Shown here one piece after another: positions 1,000 to 38,832 of a DNA stretch of 64,000 bases. Made by a program: the position numbers and the translations under genes. The notes under the pieces were generated by a model that was not told where the DNA came from, ran no database searches, and saw only the letters and a list, made by a program, of their open reading frames with translations. The DNA is from Selaginella moellendorffii. Lineage: Eukaryota > Plantae > Lycopodiophyta. The stretch is taken from the NCBI RefSeq assembly GCF_000143415.4, contig NW_003314395.1, positions 1-64,000 on the forward strand. Direction: 5' to 3'. The first letter of the stretch is position 1. Each line of letters begins with the position of its first letter.

Positions 1000-1827
1000 A
1001 TGTCGGAACGCGCGGTTTCGTCAGGTATGGATGCTTCTCTCCATCAAGAAGCTACGGTCTCTCGCGATCATGAGCCTCCAACGCTTGGCCGCCGAGCTCA
1101 AGCGCCCTGGCATGGCGGCCATCACCGAGCTTCACACCCGCGAGCTCCAGCTCCAGCTCCAGCGCATCGAGCAGCGCATGGACACCACCGTCCTCGAGCA
1201 TCTCATGGAGGCCACGAGCCAGCGCCACCTTTAGCTCCAGTTCTTCAAGGTGGCGCTCCAGTTCCAGCTCCGGCTCCAGCGCCAGCTGCTTTCGTTCATG
1301 CTCGCGGCCACCACCCTGGTGATCGAGCTCCAGCGCCTGCTCTCCTTGATCATGCTCGCCACCACGATCCTGCTCCACCAGCAGCGGTGTACCATCATCA
1401 TCACGGTGATGGAGCTCCTCTGGTTGTTCACCACCATCACCATGGTCACCATCATGGAGGCCGCCACCACCACCACCACCACCACCACCATCGTCCCGAC
1501 GGTCACAACGCAGCGATGGCCACACCGACACCCGCGGCAGTGGTTACAGTGGCTCGGAGGACGCCCTGGTCGCTGCTCCAGCTTCTTCTCTGGGTTTTGG
1601 TTGCGGTCTTGGTCCTGCTTGCGTGCTTTTTGCTAGTGCGATGGATGTTATCTCGAAGGAAACAGCGCAGGAATGCGATCTTTCAGGACCCTCAGTGGCG
1701 GATCGAAGTGACGAATCCTCTGGCAGTTGTGGTGGACGATTCTCTGACTGAGAAGAAAGAGCCCGAGTGGAGGATTAAAGTGCTAAACGCACAGGAGGAA
1801 GACGATTCTCTGACTATGAGCTTGTGA
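1000..1827 (+). CDS. His/Pro/Ala-rich (AGP-like) single-pass membrane protein, copy 1
   Basis: Intact ORF with APAPAP modules, poly-His tract, hydrophobic helix, basic RRKQRR and a tail with two PxWRIxVxN..DDSLT repeats; ATG shared by all copies is at 1027. Confidence 0.7.
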   Translation: MSERAVSSGMDASLHQEATVSRDHEPPTLGRRAQAPWHGGHHRASHPRAPAPAPAHRAAHGHHRPRASHGGHEPAPPLAPVLQGGAPVPAPAPAPAAFVHARGHHPGDRAPAPALLDHARHHDPAPPAAVYHHHHGDGAPLVVHHHHHGHHHGGRHHHHHHHHHRPDGHNAAMATPTPAAVVTVARRTPWSLLQLLLWVLVAVLVLLACFLLVRWMLSRRKQRRNAIFQDPQWRIEVTNPLAVVVDDSLTEKKEPEWRIKVLNAQEEDDSLTMSL

Positions 1828-1899
1828 AAGTACGGTGCTACCAGCATAGCGAGTGCTCGAGAGGTTTAAGCGGCGGGATTAGTGTGGTCTAGAATGCAC

Positions 1900-2560
1900 T
1901 CTGGCTTCACTCTAAACGGCACCAACTGACGATGCCTTGCTCTCATGAAGTACCGAGGCTGTGATCTGGACGCTCAAACGGTTGATACTGCATTGGAAGA
2001 CCTGTTCCAGTGTTTGGAGTGAAGAAGACACAGAGAGCTTCGTCCATCTGCAAAGGTTATATTCATCGCGACAATCTCTATGCAAGGTGTCGAAGCCTCG
2101 TCAAGTTTTTAAATGAATACCCCGGAAGCAACATCGGACTATCTTGATTGCCGGCTATGCTCAGCACAACGAACCGGACGAGCTGTTTCAGCGGATGCTG
2201 ATAAACTTTCGTGGCAGAACTGAAGGCTTGGGCAGCTCTGGCAATTAGGAAGGTAATTCACTTGACTATCTCCAGATATAGAGACGAAGTCATTGCGTCC
2301 GTGGCCAACTCAAAGCGAGAGTATCACTGGTGCTGAGCATGTAGTATTGCGAAGGACTGCCGAGTTATGGTCACCTGCGGCTTTGTTCTGGAAGTCTTAA
2401 AACCGGACGGGATTGCTTTCACTTCATCCTCACTGAGTGTAGCGATGCTGGCTTGGTCGACACAGCAACCCAGGCAATGAGCTGATCGTAGGTAACTCCA
2501 GATCTGGAGCACTTTCACTGTATGGTGGTGAGGCTGTCGAGATGGCGAAAACGATGCCTT
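1900..2560 (+). pseudogene. PLS-type PPR gene debris (copy 1)
   Basis: Frameshifted PPR words (LYARC, LIAGYAQHNEP, LKPDGIAF, LTECS.AGLV). Confidence 0.65.
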
Positions 2561-2913
2561 TGTGGATTATATTTTATGCTTTAAGATTTATTTCGACTTT
2601 TATTTATTGAAAAAGGAGTTGATTTCACGGTATCTTTTATTAGCTAATTATTTTTTTAGAGAGAGAAAGAGAAAAAATAATGGAGAGGCTATAACTTAAA
2701 TAATATAGAAAGGTGGTTTTAAAGAATTATAATGTTTCTCTTTGTTTCTCTTTTCTGTTGACATTTTTGGTTCTGAAACACAAAGTTGTCTGAGTGTGTG
2801 TCAGTGTTCTAATGTGGGTAGCAAGCTCAACAACTTTACAATAGACTAGATATGTCAAAGAGAGGGTTAGTATTTGCTAGTTTTTAACCTTGAGTTAGCT
2901 CTGGAGGAACAAT

Positions 2914-3106
2914 GATTCTAAGAGATGGGGAAGTCCTGTGTGAAGGGCATAATGTGCACTGCCCATCGAAAGGGAATCAAGTTAATATTCCCGAATTGGG
3001 ACAAGGAAGTGGGCGGTAACGCCGACAAATCCAGAGACACTGGCAGGGGCCCTGGAAAGAGTTCTCTTTTCTTTTTAACAGGCCTGCCGACCTTGAAATT
3101 GGTTCA
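2914..3106 (+). pseudogene. degenerate 25S/26S rRNA fragment
   Basis: gattctaagagatggggaag...cgaaagggaatcaagttaatattcccgaa...gaaagagttctcttttctttttaacaggcctgccgaccttgaaattggtt is collinear with a conserved LSU rRNA segment; absent at the same position in other unit copies. Confidence 0.85.
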
Positions 3107-3279
3107 TAGCAGCTTAACTAATAAAAGATGACAAAATCAACTATAAATCCACTTAATCTCCTTCAAATATTATTCTTCCTTTTTAATAAATAAAAGTAGA
3201 AATAAAATTTAATGCATTAAATAATCAGCATAACCCAAGCTTTTTGCATCCTCTAGAAAGTTCAAAATTCATTTTTGTG

Positions 3280-3474
3280 TCAAAACTTTCTTGGCTCCCA
3301 AAACCAATCCATTATTGAGTAATGCCAAGAAAAATCCTTACAACCATTTCTAAGAGTATACTCACAACAGCCCTTCATTCCACCAGCTTTTGAGGACTTG
3401 CAGTGATGAGGATCATACTTCTCCAGGAATTGAACATCATCTCCCCCAATATTTTGCCCAAAATTCATAATCAT
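3280..3474 (-). CDS. small Cys-containing ORF of unknown function (copy a)
   Basis: 64-aa ORF in AT-rich DNA, open in three copies; no recognised domain. Confidence 0.3.
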   Translation of the reverse strand: MIMNFGQNIGGDDVQFLEKYDPHHCKSSKAGGMKGCCEYTLRNGCKDFSWHYSIMDWFWEPRKF

Positions 3475-3599
3475 TTTACTTTTTTTGACAATACTTTATA
3501 TGCTAGAAGTTTAATTGGAGAATGGAAAGGCTATAATTAAAATAGTATGTAGTGGATACAAAAATGGTTATAAAAATTATAAGATAAAAAGGAGTGTTG

Positions 3600-4800
3600 G
3601 TTTGGCATTTCGCTCTGTTTCAAGCTGACCATGATCACTTGGGAAGTGGAAGAATTTTATAGCCAGACAAGAAGCAAGCTGCAGCCTACGTGCATATGGA
3701 ACTGTAGGCAAAGTTCAGAAGAAGCTTGGACACTGACAAACGTGGAATCATTCATAAGTTTGTACTTATGGGATAAAACTCACGCACATAGGGACAAGAT
3801 GGCTTCTCAAGGCTGCTCTCAAGGATCAGGGGTAGGTTTCAGACGTAGGGGCCATTGCATGGAACATTCCTGACAAAGAAAAAGAGGAGTCGTTGTGTGG
3901 GTATAGCAAGAGGCTGACTATCATTGTGAGTTCAAGAGCAACAATTTGTATTGGCAAGAATTTGCATGTAGACCTGCAATATTTCATCTCCACTCATAGA
4001 TCCTGGCACTTGATCTCTTTTTCCAGCATGTAGTAGCAAGGCTGTCAACTTGAGAAGCATGCCAGCTGATTCCAGGATGGAAACTGGATTTTTGATGAGC
4101 AAAAGAGGTAAGCTTAGTTCTGGACTGCAACAATGTATTAACTTTAAGAAGTTTTATATGCAGACAAAAGATTCCACATTCTAAACCTCTTGGACTCTAC
4201 TCCCAAGTGTGGCATGCTCAACAAGTTTTCGCAGTACATGGGAGCAGCTAAAGGAAATGACAAAGCCGAGAAAGGAATGGCTCTTCATTCGGCAGCTTGC
4301 AAGGCGGGCTATGATCTTGACATGTTCATGGCAAGGAGTCTGGTGGATCTATATGCAAGGTGTGGGAGCATGGAAGATTCATGCAAGATAGGTGCAAATT
4401 GTGGATATGAAGCTGATGCATTTGTCATGAGCAGCCTCGTGGACATGTGGAAGCATCAGAAGTATTTGGGAGGATGAAGAACCACAACGTTGGTTGTATG
4501 GAATATAATCATCATGGGACATGCACTTTGAGCGCTTCTATTGGATGTAATGAGATGCTGGAATTGTAGAAAAACATTGTTTCGTGGGATATATTGAGAA
4601 TATGTCTCAAAATGTCTACCTTTGCTCTCGAGCTCTACAAGCAAGCTGGCAGCCAAACACTCAGGCTTAGCTGGTGCTTTTGTGCAAAGAGGGAAGAGTC
4701 CACAAGCTCCACATGAATGATTTTTGGGGCAGCCTGGATATGAGATGATTGGTAGTTTCCTTTAGATGGGGGACATTGATTTGAGGGGCACTGCTATATT
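3600..4800 (+). pseudogene. PPR pseudogene fragments
   Basis: MFMARSLVDLYARCGSMED and FVMSSLVDM motifs with stops and frameshifts. Confidence 0.75.
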
Positions 4801-5159
4801 GAAGTGTGAGAGATCTGGTATAGACAAGAACAAGGAGGCAAACTGGCTTTTTGCTCTAGCTCTAGTTTTGGAATATAGATGATTGTAGATAGATTGGTTT
4901 CTTTTGATATGTGTGTTCTTAGAAATTTTACATCCAAGTCAAGCTATACATTGAGTCTATTCACCTCCTTGATGTCATTTTGAACTTTTAATTTGGCTCT
5001 TGTTTAAAATAATGTCATCAATAGTCTCTTCATCCTCATCATGACCCATACTCTTCATTAGGATCAACATCCCCCCCTCCCCCCCAAAAAGAACAATTCC
5101 AATGAAATCAACAAGCCCTAAATTCCTTCATTTTCTCTTCTTTGAAAGATAAAATGTAA

Positions 5160-5828
5160 TCTACCTCTAGCAATGGTGGTGACTGTTGGAAACAGAAAAA
5201 ATGTTCTAGAGAATTTTAAAAGAGAAAACGAAAATACCTTCGCCATCCTTGCTGATTTTGCGTATAGCCAAGTTCCTCGTATCCACCTAAGGACCGCGCC
5301 ATTGTCACAAATAGCAAGGCTTTGTGGGCGATTAAAAAGTGACTTTGCCGCCGGGCTGTCGACATAGCCGGACTCCCCCACGAGTGAACCGGCAAGAGCT
5401 TCCAAGCTGCTATCTAGAGGAAAAAAAAATCTTAAGCTTTGGCGCCACAAAACAAAGCATAAGAAAAGCCTCTAGTGCTTACTCCAGTCGAGAATTCCCT
5501 GTGCAGCGAGTGGCGCCTCTTCCAGACGCTCCCCAAGGGTATGAGGATCGTCAGTAGTGTGCGAGAGTGGCAGTCTCAGCTTCCATATACGATTGCCACT
5601 AGAATCGAGCGCCAACACAAACTTGTTCCGCAGGTCCATATACAAGCCAAAGGCATTTACCGAGTGCTTGTCGAGATCAAACAAGGTCTTGACAGTAAAC
5701 CCAGAACAAGCAAGAGAGTTCAACTCACTAACAAACTGACCTGAAGCGTCATTAGCAAGCGAGGCGACCAGCAGCGCTCCGATGATCCAGGCCGAGCTGT
5801 TCTTCATATCGTGCTCTAAAACCCTCAA
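5160..5828 (-). pseudogene. NHL-repeat gene 5' half, inverted and truncated
   Basis: SGFTVKTLFD, LALDSSGNRIWKL and GESGYVD..SLFNRPQSLAICDNG; breaks off after VTTIA. Confidence 0.8.
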
Positions 5829-9840: not shown

Positions 9841-9970
9841 AACAATCCTTTATTTCTTAAAATTTTTTTAACCATTTTGGTATCCACTACATACTCTTTT
9901 AATTATAGCCTTTCCATTCTCCAATTAAACTTCTAGCATATAAAGTATTGTCAAAAAAAGTAAAATTATT

Positions 9971-10159: not shown

Positions 10160-10177
10160 CACAAAAATGAATTTTGA

Positions 10178-13528: not shown

Positions 13529-13685
13529 TTATGCCTTACTTTAGAAGATATAAGGCATATTTCACATAATTGCCCTTGATTCCTCCCTATGGGGCTAGAT
13601 ATAATGTGAGTGCTCTCAAAATCTATAAAAGAGTGGCATCTTTCACACTAAGCAGTGTTTGTCAGGAATCCCCCAATTCTTGCCA

Positions 13686-21443: not shown

Positions 21444-22850
21444 TTGAGGGTTTTAGAGCACGATAGCTCGACCTGGATCATCCGAGCGCTGCTGCTCGCC
21501 TCGCTTCCTAATGACGCTTCAGGTCGGTTTGTTCGTGAGTTTAACGCTCTTGCTCAAAACTTTTGTTCTGGGTTTTCTGTCAAGACCTTGTTTGATCTCG
21601 GCAAGCACTCGGTAAATGCCTTTGGCTTGTTTCCAGACCCGCAGAACAAGTTTGTGTTGGCGCTCGATTCTAGTGGCAATCGTATATGGAAGCTGAGACT
21701 GCCACTCTCGCAGAGTAAGCACTAGAGGCTTTCTTATGCTTCGTTTTGTGGTGCCAAAGCTTAAGTATTTTTTTCCTCTAGATAGCAGCTTGGAAGCTTT
21801 TGCCGGTTCACACGTGGGGGAGTCCGGCTATGTCGACGGCCCCGCGGCAAAGTCACGTTTTAATCGCCCACAAAGCCTTGCTATTTGCGACAATGGCGCG
21901 GTCTTTGTGGATACGACGAACTTGGCTATACGCAAAATCAGCAAGAATGGCGAAGGTAGTTTCGTTTTCTCTTTTAAAAATCTCTAGAACATTTTTTCTG
22001 TTTCCAACAGTGACCACCATTGCCGGAGGTAGCTCTCGAAGGCCAGGCATTGCCGACAGCCCGGAGACACAGCTCGTTTCTCAAGTGACTTTAGCATGGC
22101 GTGTTCTTGTGGCTCCTTACTCATAGCCGATCACGGAACCGGCTGATTCGCAAGATACAAATCGATGATCCAAAGTCGTGTGATTCAAGTGATTCAGCCG
22201 TTTCAGGTGCCTTCTCATCCTTTACCTGAATTTTTTTTCTTTCGATTGGATTTAAAACTCCTGCTTTTTGTTGATTTCATGATCAGGATCACAAAAATGG
22301 GCTTTAATTCCCGTAGTGCTGCTTGGCGTCTGTCTGGGGATGCCTCTGGGAGCTTTTATAATTTGGAAGATACTTGATCAGCAACTCCGGCAAGTAAGTT
22401 TCACGAGCAAAGCTGGTGACTCTTATGAAAATATTTCTAGGGAGGCGATCAGCTGGGGAACACTGAAAGATTGCTGGCAGACGTTCCGGAGGACGATGAT
22501 CTGCAAGTTCGGCAGCAGAAGCGAACTTGCTAGTGCCGTCTTTAGTCTTTTCCTGCTTGTATGTCATCAGGCAAAGCTCCTCGCGTCTGTCTTCTTTGGT
22601 GTTGCACACGAAGTAAAAACGAAGCCAACTGCGCCTGTCAAACAAGATCAAGACCTCCACTCTCTCCTTGGAAACACGAAAGATGAGCCTCCAGACCTCA
22701 TTGATTTCATGGAACTCTCCGAACTTGGAATCTTCTGTTGCTCCTTCTCGCCCTTCTTCCTTTTCCGGATTCGAGGAATGAGCTCGAGTGTTTGGAGAAG
22801 TTCCAGCAGGAATTCAAGGACAAGCTCAAGCACAGCTAAGAATGTGCTCA
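21444..22850 (+). pseudogene. NHL-repeat domain protein gene (copy 2), frameshifted
   Basis: Full exon set with short introns; 1-bp deletions near 22060 and 22135 relative to copy 3. Confidence 0.8.
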
Positions 22851-22903
22851 CACAAACTTTGTTTTTCCACTCTTCTTGAATAGTCCATTGTTTTACAAAT
22901 AAG

Positions 22904-23055
22904 TTGACGCTCATGTTCCGGCCGGCCGAGGAGATGGACGTGCTCGAGTTCTCTGAGGCGGAGAGCAATCTCAACGATCTGGTGACCGAGTACCAGCAGT
23001 ACCGGGACGCTTCCATGACGACGATGACTTTGGGGAGGATCCAAATCCACAGCGT
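22904..23055 (+). pseudogene. beta-tubulin C-terminal fragment (copy 2)
   Basis: [24 protein letters not shown]. Confidence 0.85.
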
Positions 23056-23154
23056 AAAAAACCATTCTCTTTTTTCACAAAGGCAAAAGTATTACTATTT
23101 TTTTCCAAGTCAAGGGTTAGGTTATATTTTCTCACTTGGATTTTTCTATTCGAG

Positions 23155-24003
23155 ATGCGCGCGGTTTCGTCAGGTATGGATGCTTCTCTCCATCAAGAAG
23201 CTATGGTCTCTCGCGATCATGAGCCTCCAACGCTTGGCCGCCGAGCTCAAGCGCCCTGGCATGGCGGCCATCACCGAGCTTCACACCCGCGAGCACCAGC
23301 TCCAGCTCCAGCGCATCGAGCAGCGCATGGACACCACCGTCCTCGAGCATCTCATGGAGGCCACGAGCCAGCGCCAGCTTTAGCTCCAGTTCTTCAAGGT
23401 GGCGCTCCAGTTCCAGCTCCGGCTCCAGCTCCAGCTGCTTTCGTTCATGCTCGCGGCCACCACCCTGGTGATCGAGCTCCAGCGCCTGCTCTCCTTGATC
23501 ATGCTCGCCACCACGATCCAGCTCCAGCAGCAGCGGTGTACCATCATCATCACGGTGATGGAGCTCCTCTGGTTGTTCACCACCATCACCATGGTCACCA
23601 TCACGGAGGCCACCACCATCACCATGGTCACCATCATGGAGGCCGCCACCACCACCACCACCACCACCGTCGCGACGGTCACAACGCAGCGATGGCCACA
23701 CCGACACCCGCGGCAGTGGTTACAGTGGCTCGGAGGACGCCCTGGTCGCTGCTCCAGCTTCTTCTCTGGGTTTTGGTTGCGATCTTGGTGCTGCTTGCGT
23801 GCTTTTTGCTAGTGCGATGGATGTTATCTCGAAGGAAACAGCGCAGGAATGCGATCTTTCAGGACCCTCGGTGGCGGATCGAAGTGACGAATCCTTTGGC
23901 AGCTGTGGTGGACGATTCTCTGACTGAGAAGAAAGAGCCCGAGTGGAGGATTAAAGTGCTAAACGCACAGGAGGAAGACGATTCTCTGACTATGAGCTTG
24001 TGA
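23155..24003 (+). CDS. His/Pro/Ala-rich single-pass membrane protein, copy 2
   Basis: Intact ORF; shared ATG (MDASLHQ) at 23176. Confidence 0.7.
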
Positions 24004-24074
24004 AAGTACGGTGCTACCAGCATAGCGAGTGCTCGAGAGGTTTAAACGGCGGGATTAGTGTGGTCTAGAATGCA

Positions 24075-24720
24075 CTCTGGCTTCGCTCTAAAAGGCACCA
24101 ACGGACGATGCCTTGCTCTCATGAAGTACCGAGGCTGTGATCTGGACGCTCAAACGGTTGATACTGCATTGGAAGACCTGTTCCAGTGTTTGGAGTGAAG
24201 AAGACACAGAGAGCTTCGTCGATCCGCAAAGGTTATATTCGTCGCGACAATCTCTATGCAAGGTGTCGAAGCTTTTAAACGAATACCCCGGAAGCAACAT
24301 CGTGGACTATCTTGATTGCCGGCTATGCTCAGCACAACGAACCGGACGAGCTGTTTCAACGGATGCTGATAAACTTTCGTGGCAGAACTGAAGGCTTGGG
24401 CAGCTCTGGCAATTGGGAAGGTAATTCACTTGACTATCTCCAGATATAGAGACGAAGTCATTGCGTCCGTGGCCAACTCAAAGCGAGAGTATCACTGGTG
24501 CTGAGCATGTAGTACTGCGAAGGACTGCCAAGTTATGGTCACCTGCGGCTTTGTTCTGGAAGTCTTAAAACCGGACGGATTGCTTTCACTTCATCCTCAC
24601 TGAGTGTAGCGATGCTGGCTTGGTCGACACAGCAACCCAGGCAATGAGCTGATCGTAGGTAACTCCAGATCTGGAGCACTTTCACTGTATGGTGGTGAGG
24701 CTGTCGAGATGGCGAAAACG
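24075..24720 (+). pseudogene. PPR debris (copy 2)
   Basis: Homologous to 1900-2560. Confidence 0.65.
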
Positions 24721-25253
24721 ATATGCTTTATCGACTTTTATTTATTGATAAAGAAGAATATGTGGAATGTTTAAGTAGTTGATTTCATTAGCTAATAATT
24801 TATTATTTTAGGCAAAAAAAAAATTAATGGAGAGGCTATAACTTAAATAGTATGGAAAGGTGGTTTTAAAGAATTATAAGGAATAACTTTTTTTCTCTTT
24901 GTTTCTCTTTTCTGTTGACATTTTTGGTTCTGAAACACAAAGTTATCTGAGTGTGTGGTCTAACGTGGATAGCAAGCTCAGCAACTTTACAATAGACTAG
25001 GCATGTCAAAGAGAGAGTTAGCATTTGCTAGTTTTTAACCTTGAGTTAGCTTTGGAGGAACATCATGTAGTTAAAGAGCTCTTTATTCTAACTAATAAAA
25101 GATGACAAAATCAACTATAAATCCACTTAATCTCCTTCAAAAATTATTCTTCCTTTTTAATAAATAAAAGTAGAAATAAAATTTAATGCATAAAATAATC
25201 AGCATAACCCAAGATTTTCACATCCTCTAGAAAGTTCAAAATTCAGTTTTGTG

Positions 25254-25454
25254 TCAATACTTTCTTGGTTCCCAAAACCAATCCATTATTGAGTAATGCC
25301 AAGAAAAATCCTTACAACCATTTCTGAGAATATACTCACAACAGTCTTTTGTTCCACCAGCTTTTGAGGACTTGCAGTGATGAGGATCATACTTCTTTAG
25401 GAATTCATCCAAGTCTGGAACATCATCTCCCCCAATATTTTGCCCCAAACTCAT
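25254..25454 (-). CDS. small Cys-containing ORF (copy c)
   Basis: 66-aa ORF with an in-frame 4-codon difference from copies a and b. Confidence 0.3.
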   Translation of the reverse strand: MSLGQNIGGDDVPDLDEFLKKYDPHHCKSSKAGGTKDCCEYILRNGCKDFSWHYSIMDWFWEPRKY

Positions 25455-25599
25455 AATAATTTTACTTTTTATATGCTAGAAGTTTAATTGGAAAAGAGAG
25501 AAAAATTAATAGAAAGGCTATAATTAAAATAGTATGGCATAGTGAAGATGGGATACCAAAATGGTTATAAAAATTATAAGAAATAAAGGAGTGTTGCTT

Positions 25600-27250
25600 T
25601 GGCATTTCGCTCTGTTTCAAGCCAAACATGATCACTTGGGAAGTGGAAGAATGTTATAGCCAGACAAGAAGCAAGCTGCAGCCTATGTGCATATGGAGGC
25701 AAAGTTCAGAAGAAGCTCAAACATTGACAAACATGGCATCATTCATAAGTTCTTACATATGGGACAAAACTCATGCATATAGGGACAAGATGGCTTCTCA
25801 AGGCTGCTTTCAAGGATTAGGGGTACGTTTCAGAAGTAGGAGCCATTGCATGGGACATTCACAATGAAGAAAAAGAGGAGTCGTTTTGTGGGTACAGCAG
25901 GAGGCTGGCTATCATCGTGAATTCAGGAGCAATGATTTGTCATGTAGATCTGCAATATTTCATCTCCACTCATAGCTGCAAAGGTTGCTTGGCACTTGAT
26001 CTCTTTTTCCAGCATGTAGTAGCAAGGCTGTCAACTTGAGAAGCGTGCCAGCTGATTCCAGGATGGAAACTGGATTTTTGATGAGCAAAAGAGGTAATCT
26101 TAGTTCTGGACTGCAACAGTGTATTAACTTTAAAAAGTTTTATACGCAGGCAATAGATTCCACATCCTAAACAGCCTCTTGGACTCTACTCCCAAGTGTG
26201 GCATGCTCAGCAAGTTTTCACAGTACTTGGGAGCAGCTGAAGGAAATGACGAAGCCAAAAAAGGAATGGCTCTTCATTCAGCAGCTTGCAAGGCACACTA
26301 TGATCTTGACATGTTTGTGGCAAGGAATCTAGTGGATCTGTACGCAAGGGGTGAGAGCATGGAAGATTTATGCAGGATGGGTGTGAGGTGTGGATATGAA
26401 GCCAATGCATTTGTCATGAGCAACCTCATGGACATGTGGAAGCATCAGAAGTATTTGGGAGGATGAAGAACCACAATGTTGGTTGTATGGAATATGATCA
26501 TCATGGGACATGCACCTTGAGCTCGGATGTAATGAGATGCTGGAATTGCATGAAGTAGAAAAACATTGTTTCATGGGATATACTGAAAATATGCCTCAAA
26601 ATGTCCTTTGCTCTCGAGCTTTACAAGCAAGCTGACAGCCAAACACTCAAGCTTAGCAGCAAAGGTGGACATTTTGAGGGAATCTAAACAAGAATCTACC
26701 ACTGCTCATCAAATTATATGGGAAGTGTGGAGACATGGCTATTGATTGAGAAGTTTAAGTGCATCTCTGTCACAATGACACACTTCTGCATAAAATTGAT
26801 CCTCATCCAAAAGAAATAAATGCAAAGGGATATAATAGTGATATCATTGTTCCCACTATTACCTCTCCTTAAGCCATGATGGCCTGGCTTTAATCTAATG
26901 GAGTGTGCTGCCAATGCCTCAAGATTACCTTGAATTCGATTCTACCCACTTTGTTGATACAATTGGTATTGGAAGTGTACTAGAAAGCCACTGGAAAGAG
27001 GTGGTGTTTGGCCCTCAAGTTTTGCTTTGAGAGTTCTTTTGTCTTCTTCTCTTGGAGCAATTGATTCATGCCCATGGCAAAAGACTCTCTAGAATCAGAT
27101 TCAATGGTGCTTCCAATTTCTTGGCGCTTTTGCGCAAAGAGGGTAAGCTCCACATGAAGGATTTTTGAGGCAGCCTAGACACGAGATGATTGGTAGTTTC
27201 CTTTAGATGGGGGACAATGTCATTTGAGGGGCACAACTATATTGAAGTGC
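25600..27250 (+). pseudogene. PPR pseudogene fragments (longer version)
   Basis: MFVARNLVDLYARG, LIKLYGKCGDM; about 450 bp not present in copy 1. Confidence 0.7.
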
Positions 27251-29603
27251 GAGAAATTTAGTACAGATAAGGCAAACTGACTTTTTGCCCTAGCTCTAGT
27301 TTTGGAATATGGATGATTGTAGATAGATTAGTTTCTTTTGTTATGTTTGTTTTTACAAGTTCTACATCCAAGTCAAGTTATACATTGAGTTTATTCACCT
27401 CCTTGATGTCATTTTGAACTTTTAATTTGGCTTTTGTTTTATAATGACATCATCAACAGTCTCTTCATCTTCATCATGGCTATCATTACCAATGTCATAC
27501 TCTTCATTAGGATTAGCATCCCCTTGTCCCAATTCCAATGAAATCAATAAGCCCTAAATCCCTAAACCATGAAATATTTTTAGAATATTTTTATGGCTTT
27601 TATTTTAGATTTGGTAATTTCATTAAGGATTTCTAAGTGGTTTAACAAAGGTTCTTTATGCTTCATTTGTGAAGAAGTTTGAAAAAGTTGATTTTGTGAA
27701 TTAGTTATTAAAAATCATGCAAAGGATTTTCGTAAGTTTTGTGATCATTACTTTAATTTAAAGATGCAATGTTTTATCAATGGTTTGAGTTTGGTGGATG
27801 TGTAACAAAAAGTCAAAAAAGATTTTATAGCAAAATTGATTAATGCCATCACTAAACCAACTCAGTCAACTATGGTCAATAGGATGGTTAATGAGGTAAA
27901 CAACATGATAACCAATTACCCAATGCTTTACATTTAGGGAAGAAATAATAATTATTGTATTAGAAGATGACAATAAAGTTAAAAACCTTTGTTTGGACCA
28001 ATAAAGTGGAGGGTTAATGTTTTAATTTTTACAAAGCTGAATGTTATAGAAAAAGTTGTTCTCTTGTGAAGGGTTATGGGATGTTAAGGTGAATATAGTG
28101 GAATTCATTATAGATACATCTCAAGAGTATTCATTTTTATATTTTGTGATAAAAATTCAAGAACCTCAAGCTTTTATAAAACTTAATGGTTTTATGCACA
28201 ATAAACTTCTGAAAACCAAAGAGGATATTTAGACAAACCAAGTTCCTTTACCACCCTGAACTTTAAAAGATTGTGTGGCATCTAGATTAAAATGTAATTT
28301 ATGGAACAATAAAACCACTTGGTTTCTCTAAAACCACATCTTATCTTTTAAAGAAGAGAAAATGATGATATTTCATCCCTAATAACTTTATTTTTGGACT
28401 CAACTTGACTAAACATTAGATTTGCTGTTTTCAATCTAATTTAAAATTTTTTTATGAAAGAATACAATAATGACCATTTGAACCTCGATCCACTTATAAT
28501 CATACATAGTAAGGATCCACTAGTGTCGTATTAAACAATTATAAACCAATTTATTTGCCACCCATAGCAAGCTTATAGGAAATTTATTTTCACTTATGAT
28601 ACTATAGCATCCAATAAGTTAACATTAATTTTGTCAACTTATGAAATTGCTAATGTGTCTAGTACATTTTAATAAGTACAAGCAAAACTTTATACAATAC
28701 GGTAAATTGACTTCCTGAGAAATCCAAATTCAAAAGCTTACATTTGGGGATTATATGCTTAAATTGATATTTGGCATATTATGAGACTTAACCAAGAGAG
28801 GATACCAAATTTGAAACAAGTAATATTGAGTGAACTTTGTAATATTTAAACTCAAAAATTCTTAGCCCTAAATATCCTAATATTCTAAATCTCTATATAT
28901 TGAAACCTTAAATTTTAGATATTGTTCTTTTTAATTACTTACAACTAAATTTTTTATTGTTTATATATAAATAAACAAATGAGATAACATTTCAATAGAC
29001 TTTATCACTAATTTGCACAAAATATTTTAAGGAAATAATGCTATCTAGATATTTGTGAAATAGGTTTACAGTGAACTTTCTATTTTCAGATCCTAATCAA
29101 AAGTTTAAATTGTCATCTTCGTTGAGAAGCTCTTCATTAACTAATCCGGGCTTGCGGCAAATGTGTTACACGACATGCTTGGCAGCAGTCGTGCCATTCC
29201 CATCACAATCTCTTAGCATGAAGGCTGAATGCGTTCTGCCCTGAAATTGAACGTTCCATGCTTGATCTGGGAGTGGGACGTATGTGATATTTTGGGATGA
29301 AATCATTGCAATGATCTGACATTCTCTCACAGTAGAATTAGTGCTCGATATGGATAATCAAACTGGCAACATTTTCCAAAGAACAAGAGATAATCCTAAA
29401 GCTTATATAGCATACCTTTCTTGATGGATCTTAGTCCATTGTTCATGAATGGTCCTAGTACCAAAATCCATGTTTTCCACTGCCTTGCTTGATGATAACT
29501 CTTTGTAGCTTGCGAATGGCGTGAACACACAGTTCAATTGTGATTCATGGGTATTTAACCACATAGGAAATGGATCTTCTAACCATCTCAGGCTAAACGA
29601 CAC

Positions 29604-31030
29604 TTGAGGGTTTTAGAGCACGATATGAAGAACAGCTCGGCCTGGATTATCGGAGCGCTGCTGCTCGCCTCGCTTGCTAATGACGCTTCAGGTCAGTTTG
29701 TTAGTGAGTTTAACTCTCTTGCTTGTTCTGGGTTTACTGTCAAGACCTTGTTTGATCTCGACAAGCACTCGGTAAATGCCTTGAACAAGTTTGTGTTGGC
29801 GCTCGATTCTAGTGGCAATCGTATATGGAAGCTGAGACTGCCCCTCTCGCACGCTACTGACGATCCTCATACCCTTGGGGAGCGTCTGGAAGAGGCGCCA
29901 CTCGCTGCACGGGGAATTCTCGACTGGAGTAAGCACTAGAGGCTTTTCTTATGCTTTGTTTTGTGGCGCCAAGGCTTAAGATTTTTTTTTCCTCTAGATA
30001 GCAGCTTGGAAGCTCTTGCCGGTTCACTCGTGGGGGAGTCCGGCTATGTCGACGGCCCCGCGGCAAAGTCACTTTTTAATCGCCCACAAATTTGTGACAA
30101 CGCGGTCTTTGTGGCGGATACGAGGAACTTGGCTATACGCAAAATCAGCAAGGATGGCGAAGGTATTTTTTCTGTTTCCAACAGTGACCACCATTGTCGG
30201 AGGTAGCTCTCGAAAGCCAGGCTTTGCCGATGGCCCCGGAGACACAGCTCGTTTCTCAAGCGAGTCTAGCTTGGCGTGTTCTTGTGGCTCCTTACTCATA
30301 GCCGATCGCGGGAACCGGTTGATTCGCGAGATACAAATCGATGATCCAAAGTCGTGTGATTCAAGTGATTCAGCCGTTTCCGGTGACTTCTCGTCCTTTG
30401 CCTTGATTTTTTTCTTTCGATTGGATTTAAAACTCCTGCTTTTTGTTGATTTCATGATCAGGATCACAAAAATGGGCTTTAATTCCCGTAGTGCTGCTTG
30501 GCGTCTGTCTGGGGATGCCTCTGGGACCTTTTATAATTTGGAAGATACTTGATCAGCGATGCCGGCAGGTAAGTTTCACGAGCAAAGCTGGTGGCTCTTA
30601 TGAAAATATTTCTAGGGAGGCGATCAGCTGTGAAACACTGAAAGATTGCTGGCGGACGTTCCGGAGGACGATGATCTGCAAGTTCGGCAGCAGAAGCGAC
30701 GTTGCTAGCGCCGTCTTTAGTCTTTTCCTGCACAGCGATGTCATCAGGCACAGCTCCTCGCGTCTGTCTTCTTTGGTGTTGCACACGAAGTAAAAACGAA
30801 GCCAACTGCGCCTGTCACACAAGATCAAGACCTCCACTCTCTCCTTGGAAACACGAAAGATGAGCTTCCAGACCTCATTGATTTCATGGAAGGCTCTCCC
30901 AACTTGGACGCTTCTGTTGCTCCTTCTCGCCCTCTTCCCTTTCCGGATTTGAGGAATTTGACTATGGAGCTTGAGTGTTTGGAGAAGTTCCAGCAGGAAT
31001 TCAAGGACAAGCTCAAGCACAGCTAAGAAT
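29604..31030 (+). pseudogene. NHL-repeat domain protein gene (copy 3), probably non-functional
   Basis: NHL blades present, but with in-exon deletions, a 75-bp insertion and an intron shrunk to ~22 nt near 30163-30184. Confidence 0.75.
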
Positions 31031-31341: not shown

Positions 31342-32190
31342 ATGCGCGCGGTTTCGTCAGGTATGGATGCTTCTCTCCATCAAGAAGCTATGGTCTCTCG
31401 CGATCATGAGCCTCCAACGCTTGGCCGCCGAGCTCAAGCGCCCTGGCATGGCGGCCATCACCGAGCTTCACACCCGCGAGCACCAGCTCCAGCTCCAGCG
31501 CATCGAGCAGCGCATGGACACCACCGTCCTCGAGCATCTCATGGAGGCCACGAGCCAGCGCCAGCTTTAGCTCCAGTTCTTCAAGGTGGCGCTCCAGTTC
31601 CAGCTCCGGCTCCAGCTCCAGCTGCTTTCGTTCATGCTCGCGGCCACCACCCTGGTGATCGAGCTCCAGCGCCTGCTCTCCTTGATCATGCTCGCCACCA
31701 CGATCCAGCTCCAGCAGCAGCGGTGTACCATCATCATCACGGTGATGGAGCTCCTCTGGTTGTTCACCACCATCACCATGGTCACCATCACGGAGGCCAC
31801 CACCATCACCATGGTCACCATCATGGAGGCCGCCACCACCACCACCACCACCACCGTCGCGACGGTCACAACGCAGCGATGGCCACACCGACACCCGCGG
31901 CAGTGGTTACAGTGGCTCGGAGGACGCCCTGGTCGCTGCTCCAGCTTCTTCTCTGGGTTTTGGTTGCGATCTTGGTGCTGCTTGCGTGCTTTTTGCTAGT
32001 GCGATGGATGTTATCTCGAAGGAAACAGCACAGGAATGCGATCTTTCAGGACCCTCGGTGGCGGATCGAAGTGACGAATCCTTTGGCAGCTGTGGTGGAC
32101 GATTCTCTGACTGAGAAGAAAGAGCCCGAGTGGAGGATTAAAGTGCTAAACGCACAGGAGGAAGACGATTCTCTGACTATGAGCTTGTGA
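31342..32190 (+). CDS. His/Pro/Ala-rich single-pass membrane protein, copy 3
   Basis: Intact ORF, one residue different from copy 2 (QRRN/QHRN); shared ATG at 31363. Confidence 0.7.
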
Positions 32191-32320: not shown

Positions 32321-35300
32321 TGAAACGAACAAAAGAGCGAACCCTAGGCCAACCTCCCAACCCTTAAGGCATTACGGCCTTAAATCCCACCGGCCATGGA
32401 ATATTCTTGGAATATTCCCGTGGTTCGTGTCATTCTCCTCTCCCTCATGACCCAGCCACATACGGTAGCCTCGAGAAGCTATACGAGCCTCAAATGAAGG
32501 GAGTCCAAGGCAATACGGCCATGGAGAGAAGATGTGCAAACGGCAACACCAACGTCGCAACAAACGGTCACAAAAGAAAGAAAGCAATACGGCTTTCTTA
32601 CATGACAATACGGTCATGGAAAACAAGAGAATGAGAATAGAACAAACGGCTCAAATCATATAGCAATACGGCTATAGAACTCAATTCTCCCCTTCCTCAG
32701 GAATGTCATCCAAGTCATAACCAAAACTCGGAAACACTCTCTTCACGTCATCCTCAGTTTCCCATGTAGCTTCATCCATGGAATAACCATTCCATTGAAC
32801 TAACAACTCCCTAGTTGTTTTCCGGCGTGTTTTCACCAATCTTTGAGCAAGAATATTGGCTGGACCAGCCTTCTCTGCATCAATCTCTAGAACCTGGATA
32901 ATGGACTGATCCACGATATCACCAGAGTGCAAACACGTTTTAAGCTTGCTCACATGGAACGTTGGATGAATCTTCGAACTAACTGGCAAGTCCAAAGTGT
33001 ATGCAAGATCCCCTACACGCTGTAAAATTGTCCAAGGTCCACAATACTGTGGAGACAACTTAGCACTGCCACCTCCTTTTAGAGACCGTTGTGCATCCGA
33101 CAGCTTAAGGAAAACCTTGTCACCAACTTTGTACTCTTGATGACAACGATGCTCATCAGCCAATCTTTTGTCTCGTTCTTGAGCTTGCCTCATGTTCAAT
33201 TTTGCCAACTCAAGCTTGTCTTGCATATCCTCCAGGAAATCACAAGCATGAGGAACCCGAACCAAAGCCAAATTCAAACTCACAGGAGACCTAGGCTCAT
33301 AGCCATACATCGCCATAAAAGGAGACATGCCAATAGCCGATTGATGAGCGCTATTGTGAGTAAATTGAAGCAAAGGCAAGTATTTTTCCCATACTCCCTG
33401 TCGAGTCAAGTTTCCCACAAAAGACCGTAGCATATCTTCTAATAGCTGATTCATGCGCTTTGTCTGCCCATCAGATTGTGGATGCTCACCACTACTCATG
33501 CTCAGTTTAGTCTCTAGTTTTTCAAAGACCGTTTGCCAAAACTTGGACGTGAACTTAGGATCCCGATCACTCACAATGTCACCCGGCAAACCATAGAGAC
33601 TGAATAACCGGTCTACAAACAACTAAGCAAGTTCAGAAGCTTTTATCGTTGTCTTCACAGGGAAGAAGTGAGCCATCTTCGTCAAACGATCCACAACAAC
33701 CCAAATAGCATCATTTCCTCGAAAGGTTTTGGGCAAACCAGTGATAAAGTCCATCGAGATGCTATCCCACTTATTCTCGGGTACACGTAAAGGATGATAG
33801 AGGCCAGCGAGCTTCTGATGATCATCTTTGACCGCCTGGCAGGTCAAGCAACCACGTACGTACTTCTCAACATCTGACTTCATCCCAGGCCAAAAAAAAT
33901 GCCTCTTCACCAACATATACGTTCTCAATACCCCCGGATGCCCAGCATTTGGCACATCATGACACTCAACCAAAATCCGTTTGATGAGTTTGTCAACACG
34001 AGGAACCACAACACGTCCCTTCTTCACCAGGATTCCATCTCGTATTTCGAATGACGCAAACTTGTCACCCTTCAAATCTGTAGAGGCGTCCCTCAACAAA
34101 ACCTTCGCGCGAATATCAGTGATGAAGGAGTCGAAGTCAGCAAACTCCTTAAGCTCATCCAAGAGATTGCTGGATAGCTTCACAAACGAGATAGAATTTA
34201 CCATCCTGGATAATGCATCAGCCACCTTATTGTCACCTCCATGCTTGTACCGGATCTTAACAGACATTTCCTGCAGGAACTCTTGCCAACGAGCAAGGCG
34301 GCCTCGAAGATCCACATCTGGAGAGACTGATGATCTGAAACTATATGGAAGTCCGATCCATATAGATAATGTTGCTATTCTTGAGTAGGTCAATTCTGCT
34401 GTGTGACATCAAACTTGTGGCTCATGAAGGCGAGAGAATGCCTAACTTGAAGCAATACGGCCTCAAAAGCACTATCACTCACATCATTGCCTATAATTTC
34501 CACCATAGTCACCTTATCATTCATTGACCCCTTCAGAACAATCCTTGCTATGATGTCCAGCTCTATGGCAACGAAAACAATTGCCCTCCGCCTTGTCTTT
34601 CTCTCGTTGGTCCAAACGAAGTTTTTTAGCTTCACTGCCATCTTCATGCTTCGAGCCACAACGGAATAACGACCGTTTCTTCCCCGAATATGAAGAATTA
34701 GCAAGCTGGTCATCACGTTGACTACTCCGTGGACTATCTCGTTGACCAGAGTTGACCAAGTTGACTGACGGTTCGGGCGAAAAGATCTGAGCCTTAGTGA
34801 TAGTATCAGTCAATGTTGCTAGAAAATCTTTCTTGACCTTTTGCTGCACATCCACTAAGCTCAATCCTTTAATAAAACATTGCACCTTTAGCAGCTCATT
34901 GTAGGTGCCCGTGAGACTAAGGCAAAGATCACGGAACTTGCGGGCATACGCATCCAAAGACAAAGTCCCCTGCCGGATCTCTAACAACTGATTCACGAGA
35001 TCAACCTCTTCAAACTTCTTGACAAACGAAGCATGGAAAACCTTTGTCAAATCAGTCCAAGAAGTCGGCATCGGATTAGCTTTGATGTAGTTCTTCCACC
35101 ACGAAGAAGCATGGCCCGTAAGCTTCGTCACAAAGAAATCTATCTTCACCTTATCCTCACAAGGATTGTGAGACCAACAACTTTCCCACAATTCCAACTA
35201 AGAATCAACCTCTTGACTATCACAAACATCCGGTGATGATTTCCATTCCACGATACCATAATCCTTGGCATGCTTGACGTACCAATGGTAATCACGGACA

Positions 35301-35654
35301 TGAGATTGATTCAACCTTTGAGGGTTCATGCGAAGCAAGAAATCTTTGATGAGATTGACGGAATCCTTAACCTCCTTTATGTCGCTTTGAACTACAGAAA
35401 TCTGGTGTCCTTGCTGCAGAACGACATCATCAAAAGTCTCTTCCGCATCGTCATGGCTATCCTCACTAACGCCATACTCCTCATCAGGATCAATATCTTG
35501 CTCACCCGCCATCCCCAAAAGAACGTGCTGCTCTGATACCAATGAAACGAACAAAAGAGCGAACCCTAGGCCAACCTCCCAACCCTTAAGGTGTTACGGC
35601 CTTAAATCCCACAGGCCATGGAATATTCTTGGAATATTCCCGTGGTTCGTGTCA
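32321..35654 (-). mobile_element. non-autonomous Ty3/gypsy chromovirus with 112-bp LTRs, lacking protease and RT
   Basis: LTRs 32321-32432 and 35543-35654; TSD CCGAG; iMet PBS TGGTATCAGAGC at 35530-35541; PPT next to 32433; gag with CFRCHRAGHHSKDC, partial RNase H, integrase, chromodomain-like LVQWNG..EATWE. Confidence 0.95.
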
Positions 35655-36060
35655 CCGAGGCTGTGATCTGGACGCTCAAACGGTTGATACTGCATTGGAG
35701 GGCCTGTTCCAGTGTTTGGAGTGAAGAAGACACAGAGAGCTTCGTCGATCTGCAAAGGTTATATTCGTCGTGACAATCTCTATGCAAGGTGTCGAAGCCT
35801 CATCAAGTTTTTAAACGAACACCCCGGAAGCAACATCGTGGACTATCTTGATTGCCGGCTATGCTCAGCACAACGAACCGGACGAGCTGTTTCAACGGAT
35901 GCTGATAAACTTTCGTGGCAGAACTGAAGGCTTGGGCAGCTCTGGCAATTGGGAAGGTAATTCACTTGACTATCTCCAAATATAGAGACGAAGTCATTGC
36001 GTCCGTGGCCAACTCAAAGCGAGAGTATCGGCTGTCAAGATGGCGAAAACGATGCCTTTG
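35655..36060 (+). pseudogene. PPR debris (copy 3), resuming after the LTR insertion
   Basis: aagtaccgag|ccgaggctgtgatctgg reconstitutes the sequence seen in copies 1 and 2. Confidence 0.7.
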
Positions 36061-36588: not shown

Positions 36589-36835
36589 TCAAAACTTTCT
36601 TGGCTCCCAAAACCAATCCATTATTGAGTAATGCCAAGAAAAATCCTCACAAGAGTATACTCACAACAGCCCTTTGTTCCACCACCTTTTGAGGACTTGC
36701 AGTGATGAAGATCATGCTTCTTTAGGAATTCACAACAGCCCTTTGTTCCACCACCTTTTGAGGACTTGCAGTGATGAGGATCATGCTTCTTTAGGAATTC
36801 ATCCAGGTCTGGAACATCATCTCCCCCAATACTCA
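36589..36835 (-). pseudogene. small Cys ORF (copy d) with internal duplication and frameshift
   Basis: EFLKKHD(P/L)HHCKSSKGGGTKGCC present twice; downstream deletion shifts the frame. Confidence 0.5.
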
Positions 36836-37289
36836 TAATAATTTTACTTTTTGACAATACTTTATATGCTAGAAGTCTAATTGGAGGAGAGAGAAAATTA
36901 ATGGAAGGGCTATAATTAAAATAGAATGGCATAGTGAAGATAATGGTTATAAAAATTATAAGATTGCTTTGTCATTTTGCTCTGTTTCAAGCCAAACATG
37001 ATCACTTGGGAAGTGGAAGAATGTTATAGCCAGACAAGAAGCAAACTGTAGCCTATGTGCATATGGGACTGTAGGCAAAGTTTAGAAGAAGTTCAGACAC
37101 TGACAAACATGGCATCATTCATAAGGTCGTACTTATGTGTCCACGAGGCTGCTCATGACAAATACATCGGATTCATATCCACACTTCGCACCCATCCTGC
37201 ATGAATCTTCCATGCTCCCACTCCTTGCATACAGATCTACCAGACTCCTTGCCATGAACATACACTCCCTATGTACATGAGTTTTATCC

Positions 37290-37710
37290 TGTATGTCATC
37301 AGGCAAAGCTCCTTGCGTCTGTCTTCTTTGGTGTTGCAGACGAAGTAAAAACGAAGCCAACTGCGCATGTCATGGAACTCTCCAAACTTGGAATCTTCTG
37401 TTGCTCCTTCTCGCCCTCTTCCTTTTCCGGATTCAAGGAATTTGACTATGGATCTCGAGTGTTTGGAGAAGTTCCAGCAGGAATTCAAGGACAAGCTCAA
37501 GCACAGCTAAGAATGTGCTCACACAAACTTTGTTTTTCCACTCTTCTTGAATAGTCCATTGTTTTACAAATAGGTTGACGCTCATGTTCCGGCGTTCCTC
37601 CGGCGAGGAGATGGACGAGCTCGAGTTCCAACGATCTGGTGACCGAGTACCAGCAGTACCGGGCGCTTCCATGACAACGATGACTTTGGGGAGGATCCCT
37701 CCACAGCGTA
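37290..37710 (+). pseudogene. NHL 3' fragment plus beta-tubulin fragment (copy 4)
   Basis: Homologous to 22560-23055; the tubulin piece retains MFRR..GEEMDELEF. Confidence 0.75.
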
Positions 37711-38001
37711 AAAACCACTCTCTTTTTTCACAAAGTACTATTTTTTTCCAAGTCAAGGGTTAGGTTATACTTTTTCGCTTGGATTTTTCTATTCGAGATG
37801 TCGGAACGTAAGTTTCAGAAACCCAACCACAAAACACAATCATGGCTCACGATGGCTCACAAATATTCTAGTGAATATTCTAAAAATATTTTATTTTTAA
37901 TTCTAGTAATGTAGTACTTTTTATTATATATAAACTACTCAAACATCCTACAAATCATCATTATCTTCAACCTAACTGACGAAAGGGCGGTTTCGTCAGG
38001 T

Positions 38002-38832
38002 ATGGATGCTTCTCTCCATCAAGAAGCTATGGTCTCTCGTGATCATGGGCCTCCAACGCTTGGCCGCCGAGCTCAAGCGCCCTGGCATGGCGGCCATCAC
38101 CGAGCTTCACACCCGCGAGCACCAGCTCCAGCTCCAGCGCATCGAGCAGCGCATGGACACCACCGTCCTCGAGCATCTCATGGAGGCCACGAGCCAGCGC
38201 CAGCTTTAGCTCCAGTTCTTCAAGGTGGCGCTCCAGTTCCAGCTCCGGCTCCAGCGCCAGCTGCTTTCGTTCATGCTCGCGGCCACCACCCTGGTGATCG
38301 AGCTCCAGCGCCTGCTCTCCTTGATCATGCTCGCCACCACGATCCAGCTCCAGCAGCAGCGGTGTACCATCATCATCACGGTGATGGAGCTCCTCTGGTT
38401 GTTCACCACCATCACCATGGTCACCATCACGGAGGCCACCACCATCACCATGGTCACCATCATGGAGGCCGCCACCACCACCACCACCACCACCACCGTC
38501 GCGACGGTCACAACGCAGCGATGGCCACACCGACACCCGCGGCAGTGGTTACAGTGGCTCGGAGGACGCCCTGGTCGCTGCTCCAGCTTCTTCTCTGGGT
38601 TTTGGTTGCGATCTTGGTGCTGCTTGCGTGCTTTTTGCTAGTGCGATGGATGTTATCTCGAAGGAAACAGCGCAGGAATGCGATCTTTCAGGACCCTCGG
38701 TGGCGGATCGAAGTGACGAATCCTCTGGCAGTTGTGGTGGACGATTCTCTGACTGAGAAGAAAGAGCCCGAGTGGAGGATTAAAGTGCTAAACGCACAGG
38801 AGGAAGACAATTCTCTGACTATGAGCCTGTGA
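38002..38832 (+). CDS. His/Pro/Ala-rich single-pass membrane protein, copy 4
   Basis: Intact 276-aa ORF; possible upstream micro-exon at 37798-37807. Confidence 0.7.
   Translation: MDASLHQEAMVSRDHGPPTLGRRAQAPWHGGHHRASHPRAPAPAPAHRAAHGHHRPRASHGGHEPAPALAPVLQGGAPVPAPAPAPAAFVHARGHHPGDRAPAPALLDHARHHDPAPAAAVYHHHHGDGAPLVVHHHHHGHHHGGHHHHHGHHHGGRHHHHHHHHRRDGHNAAMATPTPAAVVTVARRTPWSLLQLLLWVLVAILVLLACFLLVRWMLSRRKQRRNAIFQDPRWRIEVTNPLAVVVDDSLTEKKEPEWRIKVLNAQEEDNSLTMSL

Follow-up and report, generated by a model that had tools for sequence, protein, structure and literature searches.

Why do four copies of one open reading frame (ORF) remain intact in a block of DNA where the neighbouring gene sequences are broken? 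The question is raised by the first 64,000 nucleotides of contig NW_003314395.1 of the lycophyte Selaginella moellendorffii (assembly GCF_000143415.4, forward strand), hereafter the window, which has the look of plant DNA and a G+C content of 44%. It contains four open frames of 275–282 codons, numbered here as copies 1 to 4 in their order along the strand, whose predicted proteins are 97% identical in the protein alignment. A previous reading, made from the letters alone (the sequence-only reading), had located them correctly: all four are open, and Ala-Pro (AP) modules, a variable His/Gly tract, one transmembrane helix and the motif RRKQ(R/H)R are present. The C-terminal tail that it described was also found, with a length of 51 residues and not the approximately 55 that it gave. 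That reading took the family for a metal-binding or pH-sensing surface glycoprotein resembling arabinogalactan proteins (AGPs), held intact by selection and driving the array through dosage.

Our analysis led to a different answer. The frame appears to be confined to one lineage, probably coding, and carried along as a passenger by an 8.2-kb segmental duplication, intact mainly through youth and homogenisation, and we put the probability of this reading at roughly 60%. One unannotated ORF would travel as a passenger in an 8.2-kb segmental or tandem unit that otherwise consists of gene scraps (NHL, beta-tubulin and pentatricopeptide repeat (PPR)). The frame probably is, or until recently was, real coding sequence (again about 60%), and its product would be a bitopic membrane protein of ~280 residues, with ~195 disordered residues, a helix, a basic stretch and an acidic two-repeat tail. 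The four copies would be intact chiefly through their youth (they are 0.1–2% apart in the frame) and through recent overwriting by recombination or gene conversion.

Duplication units and homogenisation of the frames

The units of copies 2 and 3 are arranged head to tail, their ATGs 8187 bp apart. Copy 4 is in a partial unit directly after the copy 3 unit, and copy 1 is found 22 kb upstream. On the 3′ side of copy 1 follow an inverted partial unit that has no His-rich frame (5161–10177) and then a full Ty3/gypsy element. The frame accounts for 10% of the 8.2-kb unit. The beta-tubulin scrap, which ends ~140 bp 5′ of the copy 2 ATG, recurs on the 5′ side of each frame, with an additional deletion in copy 4. 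Equivalents of the NHL scrap lie near 15–100 and 22095–22226. The PPR scrap of the copy 1 unit lies 2.4 kb 3′ of the frame and has an inverted copy at 9167–8922, while a PPR-looking piece directly 3′ of the stop was too decayed for Pfam or tblastn. Pfam gave no match for the other ORFs of the units. Because the units are 8.2 kb long, one inverted partial unit was duplicated without the frame, and the neighbours are scraps, with tubulin and NHL pieces before every copy, we regard the frame as a passenger. The tubulin and NHL scraps are truncated alike in every copy; they must have been broken before the duplication and are uninformative on later decay.

Some further features of the units were noted. 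The inverted partial unit by copy 1 is palindromic, with arms at 3262–5096 and 10177–8354 that are 96.8% identical, and a tandem pair follows at 10241–10961 and 10962–11677 (82% identical). A second frame is common to the units on the 5′ side of the tubulin scrap (plus strand; 202–585, 22283–22876 and 30458–30790). It is open for 111–198 codons and has a hydrophobic stretch near its start but no ATG common to the copies, and the stretch 22316–22879 has no Pfam match. This second conserved frame may be another gene scrap.

Synonymous and replacement changes among the four copies were counted by the Nei-Gojobori method. Copies 1 and 2 differ by 8 synonymous and 8 replacement changes, exactly the near equality that had been seen by eye. 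The four copies together account for 21 substitution events (10 synonymous, 11 replacement), of which 14 are transitions, an excess of 2:1. Under an unbiased mutation model the neutral synonymous fraction is 0.25, the probability of at least 10 synonymous events in 21 is 0.025 and the implied ratio of replacement to synonymous rates (omega) is about 0.38. With a transition/transversion ratio (kappa) of 4–6 and a CpG bias, the synonymous fraction is 0.30–0.31, the probability 0.07–0.10 and the implied omega ~0.5. Pairwise omega values were indeed below 1 throughout (0.25–0.38 in all pairs), but after correction for transition and CpG bias the ratio is not significantly different from the neutral one. 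The data of the window do not support purifying selection on the frame, and the claim that replacements are fewer than neutrality predicts is not supported as a sign of constraint: substitutions are evenly spread over codon positions 1/2/3 (6/7/8), and copy 1 has changed as much in its frame as in its flanks. Moreover, the probability that 21 neutral substitutions create no stop is 0.42–0.59, so that openness of the frame alone carries no information on selection. The observation that the frames are intact while their neighbours decay thus lost its force, since at 0.1–2% divergence a neutral frame has about an even chance of remaining without a stop, and the tubulin and NHL scraps were broken beforehand.

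Crude pairwise comparisons of frame and flanks seem to favour constraint. Copies 1 and 2 differ by 1.8% in the frame, 4.1% in the upstream flank and 5.3% in the downstream flank; for copies 2 and 4 the figures are 0.85%, 3.4% and 7.1%; and copies 2 and 3 differ by 0.12% in the frame and 3.7% upstream, with only 130 bp comparable downstream. The fine map contradicts this impression. The divergence of 1.8% between copies 1 and 2 continues unchanged across the 700 bp that follow the frame, and substitutions private to copy 1 number 12 in the 849-bp frame (1.4%) versus 11 in ~1070 bp of flank (1.0%). Between copies 2 and 3, the stretch from −370 to +938 (counted from the ATG and reaching 90 bp past the stop) shows a single difference, a replacement at +688. 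Copy 4 has no private substitution from +68 to +824, synonymous sites included, and four, +825 and +843 among them, in the two ends of the frame, with 1.6–2.9% private substitutions in its flanks. Copies 2 and 4 differ by one substitution from +68 to +740, yet the 150 bp that follow the stop contain 11 differences. A stretch of copy 4 that is free of private change and bordered by diverged flanks indicates a conversion tract, not constraint. Finally, the parsimony-informative sites join copies 1 and 3 against 2 and 4 upstream (4 sites), 1 and 4 against 2 and 3 across the frame (7 sites) and 1 and 2 against 3 and 4 downstream (2 sites).

This pattern is that of a mosaic from recombination or gene conversion among young repeats, in which the edges of the tracts ignore the frame. 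With its mosaic phylogeny, its frame-blind tracts and its equally unchanged synonymous sites, it matches the ordinary behaviour of young tandem or segmental duplicates homogenised by gene conversion, and no difference from that behaviour was found. Nothing supports the proposal that the gene drives the array through dosage: the frame occupies a tenth of the unit and owes much of its similarity to conversion tracts with edges elsewhere. More generally, where the neighbouring sequences were scraps beforehand, the copies have diverged by less than 2% and conversion tracts are present, intact duplicates beside broken neighbours do not testify to selection.

Indels give the only real hint of constraint. 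The flanks have 7–11 indel events per kb, mostly of lengths that are not multiples of three, whereas the indels of the frame (6, 27–30 and 3 bp) all preserve it. The ratio of frameshifting indels to substitutions in the flanks (0.15–0.20) predicts 3–4 frameshifts for 21 substitutions, and none is seen in the 0.83-kb frame (probability of none ~0.02–0.05). The hint is weakened by three facts. The 27–30-bp and 3-bp events lie in repeats whose period is a multiple of three (33-bp and CAC), homopolymer runs are 5–8 times fewer in the frame than in the flanks, and conversion erases indels.

Coding history and predicted protein

Among 2000 mononucleotide shuffles of the 849 bp, 0.15% left any of the six frames fully open, and the frame is therefore not a chance product of composition. 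The copy 2 frame has a GC content of 59%, versus 45–50% in the flanks, and a three-base periodicity, with GC fractions of 0.79/0.51/0.48 at codon positions 1/2/3. Two further frames are open for 128–169 codons over the low-complexity part; in the region of the helix and tail, all five alternative frames contain stops. The antisense and +2 frames were considered as the true frame and rejected, being open over the low-complexity part only and broken over the helix and tail.

The frame is built largely of repeats. By eye, the N-terminal domain repeats a module of an AP run, two or three hydrophobic residues and a His run about six times. The His/Gly tract is the site of the length differences among the copies within the coding part. 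The two repeats of the tail share the motif P-x-W-R-I-x-V-x-N ... D-D-S-L-T, and their alignment score was matched by none of 2000 DNA shuffles and none of 5000 protein shuffles. These internal repeats are still in frame after roughly a third to 40% DNA divergence. The conservation of frame between such diverged repeats argues for a coding history longer than the recent duplications, and is the best argument that we can draw from the sequence for a coding frame.

The start of the frame may differ from its first ATG. Copy 4 starts at an internal Met, which in the other copies is residue 10 (copy 1) or residue 8 (copies 2 and 3). Both the 6-bp indel and the ~180-bp insertion of copy 4 lie 5′ of it, which suggests that this internal Met may be the true start. 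The insertion is unique in the window and has GTAAGT, a perfect donor-like hexamer, at its start and AAAG at its end. It was rejected as an intron, as removal from GT to AG is out of phase and leaves the frame unrestored. Upstream of copy 2, the frame stays open over 22957–23154 without any ATG, GTG or TTG. No decayed additional copies were found in the window beyond the four by tblastn and blastn of the frame.

The predicted protein of copy 2 (282 residues) contains 46 His, 44 Ala, 28 Pro, 25 Arg and 20 Gly. Its N-terminal domain (residues 1–195) has 24% His, 10% Gly, 37% Pro+Ala+Ser+Thr (PAST) and 17 Arg but no Lys, with 14 AP/PA, 2 TP and 0 SP dipeptides, including APAPAPA runs. There is a single strongly hydrophobic segment (best 19-residue Kyte-Doolittle window from residue 202, hydropathy 3.3), and AlphaFold2, run with no alignment, gave a single confident helix at residues 199–235 (predicted local distance difference test scores of 89–98), the remainder being disordered. 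The only Cys lies within the helix. RRKQRR, or RRKQHR in copy 3, follows the helix and is itself followed by the hydrophilic tail, which is acidic. Two basic residues precede the helix and six follow it, which predicts a cytosolic tail and an outer or lumenal N-terminal arm; the positive-inside argument made previously for this topology is sound. If the frame is translated, the helix would act as a signal anchor, and if the protein is made, its 46 His would make it a chelator of divalent metals (Zn, Cu, Ni) whose charge shifts around pH 6. Its most likely activity might then be that of a membrane-tethered metal-buffering or pH-responsive arm, a suggestion drawn from composition that we hold with low confidence. 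Insertion of a long Arg-rich arm by a signal anchor, with no signal peptide, is unusual, and it weighs against a surface glycoprotein as pictured before, unless a signal peptide is encoded by an unseen exon further upstream.

Relatives and alternative readings

Pfam searches with three copies gave sub-threshold rows driven by the helix only. The best was FAM174-like (PF06679) with 20.5–21.2 bits (E 4e-4; cut-off 27.7), and it spans the low-complexity stretch, the helix and the basic residues. An NCBIfam scan of the frames found nothing meaningful. A word search with the whole protein was swamped by the His tracts, and its sole match was to a His tract of the CDF-family protein P0001 (PF01545; E 3e-3), covering 9% of the query; with residues 176–282 it gave no match. 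The helix and tail, searched by phmmer against 1.84 billion representative proteins, had 0 matches at E ≤0.001, so that no characterised family was found by this route either. In the ESM Atlas, the best score was 0.80, a value reached by shuffled sequences a third of the time, and the recognition value of 1561 is below that of most real families. A metagenome locus scan found no relative, and a literature search for a comparable His-rich Selaginella protein returned nothing relevant. The family is thus unrecognised in all of these resources, as had been said of it, with the limit that the libraries probably lack the gene models of this genome. Indeed, the 724-residue PPR gene of the window, used as a positive control, had a best match of only 42% identity, with no near-identical entry and no exact gene call, and the searched sets evidently do not contain the gene models of this region. 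The blank searches show the family to be unannotated and to lack distant relatives that can be detected; they do not imply that paralogues or close orthologues are absent, and a status of 'orphan' is weakly founded.

Several known systems resemble the predicted protein in part. AGPs are recognised by an N-terminal signal peptide, a PAST content of at least ~50%, AP/SP/TP glycomodules and a C-terminal glycosylphosphatidylinositol (GPI) signal. Like AGPs and the His-rich non-classical AGPs and hydroxyproline-rich glycoproteins, the ORF has AP glycomodule runs, a disordered low-complexity His-rich domain and a membrane attachment. Unlike them, it has no signal peptide and a PAST of 37%, and a helix with a ~60-residue hydrophilic tail replaces the GPI signal. 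No sequence relationship between the ORF and AGPs was detectable. Membership in the classical or His-rich AGPs was rejected, as three of the four tested features (signal peptide, PAST and GPI signal) fail and only the glycomodules are present; the picture of an AGP-like surface glycoprotein is unsupported for the same reason. The FAM174-like proteins (PF06679, DUF1180) are likewise small single-pass proteins with a low-complexity N-terminal part, one helix and a basic stretch after it, but they carry a signal peptide. Membership was rejected on the score below 27.7, and the match is probably compositional. Fungal Mid2-type single-pass surface sensors (PF04478) have a similar architecture, with a long disordered and heavily modified outer arm, a single helix and a short cytosolic tail, and the ESM Atlas feature search returned Mid2 as its sole named cluster, with a score of 0.75, far below a meaningful level. 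However, the arms of the fungal Mid2 proteins are Ser/Thr-rich, whereas that of the ORF is rich in His, Ala and Pro, and it has no Pfam match to them.

The His-rich segments of HIPP metallochaperones, KS-type dehydrins and the His loops of CDF/ZIP transporters have His/Gly runs of a kind that binds Zn, Ni, Cu and Co by chelation and has its titration range close to neutral pH. Similar long runs occur in the ORF, but they resemble these plant segments in composition only. The ORF lacks an HMA domain, a K-segment or a transporter core. An HMA/HIPP membership, which would require an HMA domain with a CxxC motif, was rejected: Pfam showed no HMA row up to an E of 1, and the lone Cys lies within the helix. 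A transposon-encoded protein was also rejected, as Pfam found no transposase, Rep/helicase or gag/pol domain in the frame.

Several observations weigh against a coding passenger kept open by youth and homogenisation. On the side of neutrality, these are the omega values below 1 in every pair, the missing frameshifts, and the fact that the 6-bp indel and the insertion of copy 4 both precede the internal Met, as though constraint set in at that residue. On the side of coding, they are the even spread of substitutions over codon positions, the ATG only ~140 bp from the end of the tubulin scrap with no obvious promoter, the absence of any relative in the searched protein sets and the absence on record of an exact gene call for the four frames or the two internal-Met versions. 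Moreover, no signal peptide is apparent from hydropathy (no hydrophobic core in the first 30 residues; maximal 9-residue hydropathy of 0.6), and a ~195-residue N-terminal domain would have to cross the membrane without one. Three other explanations were weighed. The first is a functional gene whose product is a metal-binding or pH-sensing surface glycoprotein, maintained by purifying selection in an array favoured by dosage. It would account for the low omega values (with the P of 0.025 under the unbiased model), for zero frameshifting indels beside flanks rich in them, for the old internal repeats still in frame and for the plausible protein architecture. We consider it unlikely: the P value rises to 0.07–0.10 with the 2:1 transition excess and CpG bias, private changes of copy 1 are as dense in the frame as in the flanks, and the tracts of low divergence cross the frame borders and leave synonymous sites unchanged too. 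In addition, the in-frame indels of the coding part sit in 33-bp and 3-bp repeats of a homopolymer-poor frame, the signal peptide is lacking and PAST is 37%, the first ATG of copy 4 is severed, and the inverted partial unit was duplicated without the frame.

The frame may instead be untranslated, either a dead relic (such as an exon captured from a longer gene for a His-rich membrane protein and separated from its signal-peptide exon and promoter) or a frame generated by repeats that was never a gene, and open only through being GC-rich, repeat-built and young. The blank searches and missing gene calls, the ESM Atlas recognition of 1561, the lack of a signal peptide, a tiny promoter space occupied by the tubulin scrap, the two other frames open for 128–169 codons over the low-complexity part and the even codon positions would all agree with this. 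It is nevertheless a minority possibility in our estimate, as the helix and tail are not of low complexity and have stops in the five other frames, shuffles almost never yield a full-length open frame, the diverged internal repeats kept their frame, and omega is consistently, though weakly, below 1. As a further alternative, the frame and the scraps could be cargo of a mobile element that picks up gene fragments (a Helitron, or a DNA transposon of Pack-type or GingerRoot-like kind), spread by transposition and local duplication with no host function. Same-strand pieces of three unrelated genes adjoin the frame, as is typical of capture, and a gene-fragment-carrying DNA transposon has been described in the spikemoss Selaginella lepidophylla (PMC6839031). 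This origin is doubtful for the copies in the window, which lie in 8.2-kb head-to-tail units as unequal crossing-over gives. No terminal repeats, Helitron ends or target duplications were identified around the module, in a search that was not exhaustive; the ORFs of at least 110 amino acids contain no transposase or Rep/helicase domain in Pfam and only Ty3/gypsy proteins; and the window has no tRNA.

For the coding passenger, then, some consequences can be outlined. If the frame is expressed, it would illustrate cleanly how a lineage-specific membrane protein can be put together from internal repeats. Its product would also be a new poly-His chelator, tethered to the membrane, of an early-diverging vascular plant, with a bearing on metal homeostasis and on the origin of new genes. 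The case also points to a multi-copy ORF family that repeat-masking gene annotation may have missed. A bolder extension, which we judge improbable, is a lycophyte-specific family born from expanding triplet, 33-bp and 72-bp repeats. Such a family would comprise His-rich membrane-tethered metal- or pH-responsive proteins without a signal peptide, expressed, selected and expanding by segmental duplication and dispersal.

Feature coordinates and other genes of the window

The coordinates of the four frames, of their parts and of the adjoining scraps are listed in Table 1.

Table 1. Positions in the window of the His-rich frames, their internal features and the associated gene and element pieces.
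Feature	Position	Strand	Remarks
Copy 1, His-rich membrane ORF	1000..1827	+	275 aa; most diverged copy; one His/Gly repeat unit fewer
Copy 2	23155..24003	+	282 aa; reference copy
Copy 3	31342..32190	+	282 aa; one base from copy 2 (R to H, giving RRKQHR)
Copy 4	38002..38832	+	276 aa; starts at internal Met, upstream ATG severed
AT-rich insertion in copy 4, ~180 bp	37808..37986	+	between first ATG (37798) and remainder of frame
Variable His/Gly tract	23578..23668	+	33-bp tandem repeat (2.4–2.7 copies), then CAC/CCA run; Tandem Repeats Finder
Membrane helix and basic RRKQRR stretch	23743..23859	+	~residues 197–235 of copy 2; hydropathy, AlphaFold2
C-terminal tail	23860..24000	+	two diverged in-frame repeats, ~24 codons each; self-alignment
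Full duplication unit (copy 2 unit), ~8.2 kb	21991..30164	+	self-BLAST
Beta-tubulin scrap, residues 389–430 of ~445	22892..23017	+	E 1e-8 to tubulin beta chains
NHL-repeat scrap, ~55 residues	30181..30345	+	closest to SOQ1 NHL domain, E 7e-6; head of copy 3 unit
Decayed PPR scrap, copy 1 unit	4268..4528	+	E ~1e-5 (weak); tblastn with the intact PPR protein of the window
Truncated Ty3/gypsy insertion in copy 3 unit	32321..35659	-	gag, integrase zinc finger, SH3/chromodomain; no reverse transcriptase found

The truncated Ty3/gypsy insertion lies ~130 bp 3′ of the copy 3 stop and has TG..CA ends and a CCGAG target duplication. The corresponding site is empty in copy 2, and the element must therefore have inserted after the split of copies 2 and 3. 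The full-length Ty3/gypsy element (13660–19210, plus strand) has largely open frames for gag, reverse transcriptase, RNase H, integrase and chromodomain. Its long terminal repeats of 363 bp (13660–14022 and 18848–19210) are 97% identical, which makes it about as young as the duplications. No transposon protein domains other than those of gypsy elements were found by Pfam in the scanned ORFs of at least 110 amino acids, and neither the tRNA scan nor the Rfam scan detected any tRNA or Rfam family in the window.

Outside the duplicated block, two intact intronless PPR genes of 724 and 727 amino acids are found at 42640–44814 (minus strand) and 52695–54878 (plus strand). A spliced DUF7810 (PF25102) gene with several exons lies between them at 47940–50274 (minus strand). 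Three of its pieces were matched with E values of 5e-41, 1e-52 and 3.5e-5, and it looks like an ordinary intact host gene. Finally, a piece of a glycosyl hydrolase family 1 gene was identified at 58034–58450 (minus strand, E 1e-8), and a frame of a BAHD-type acyltransferase at 62129–63061 (minus strand), covering profile positions 155–428 of 434 with an E value of 1e-34.

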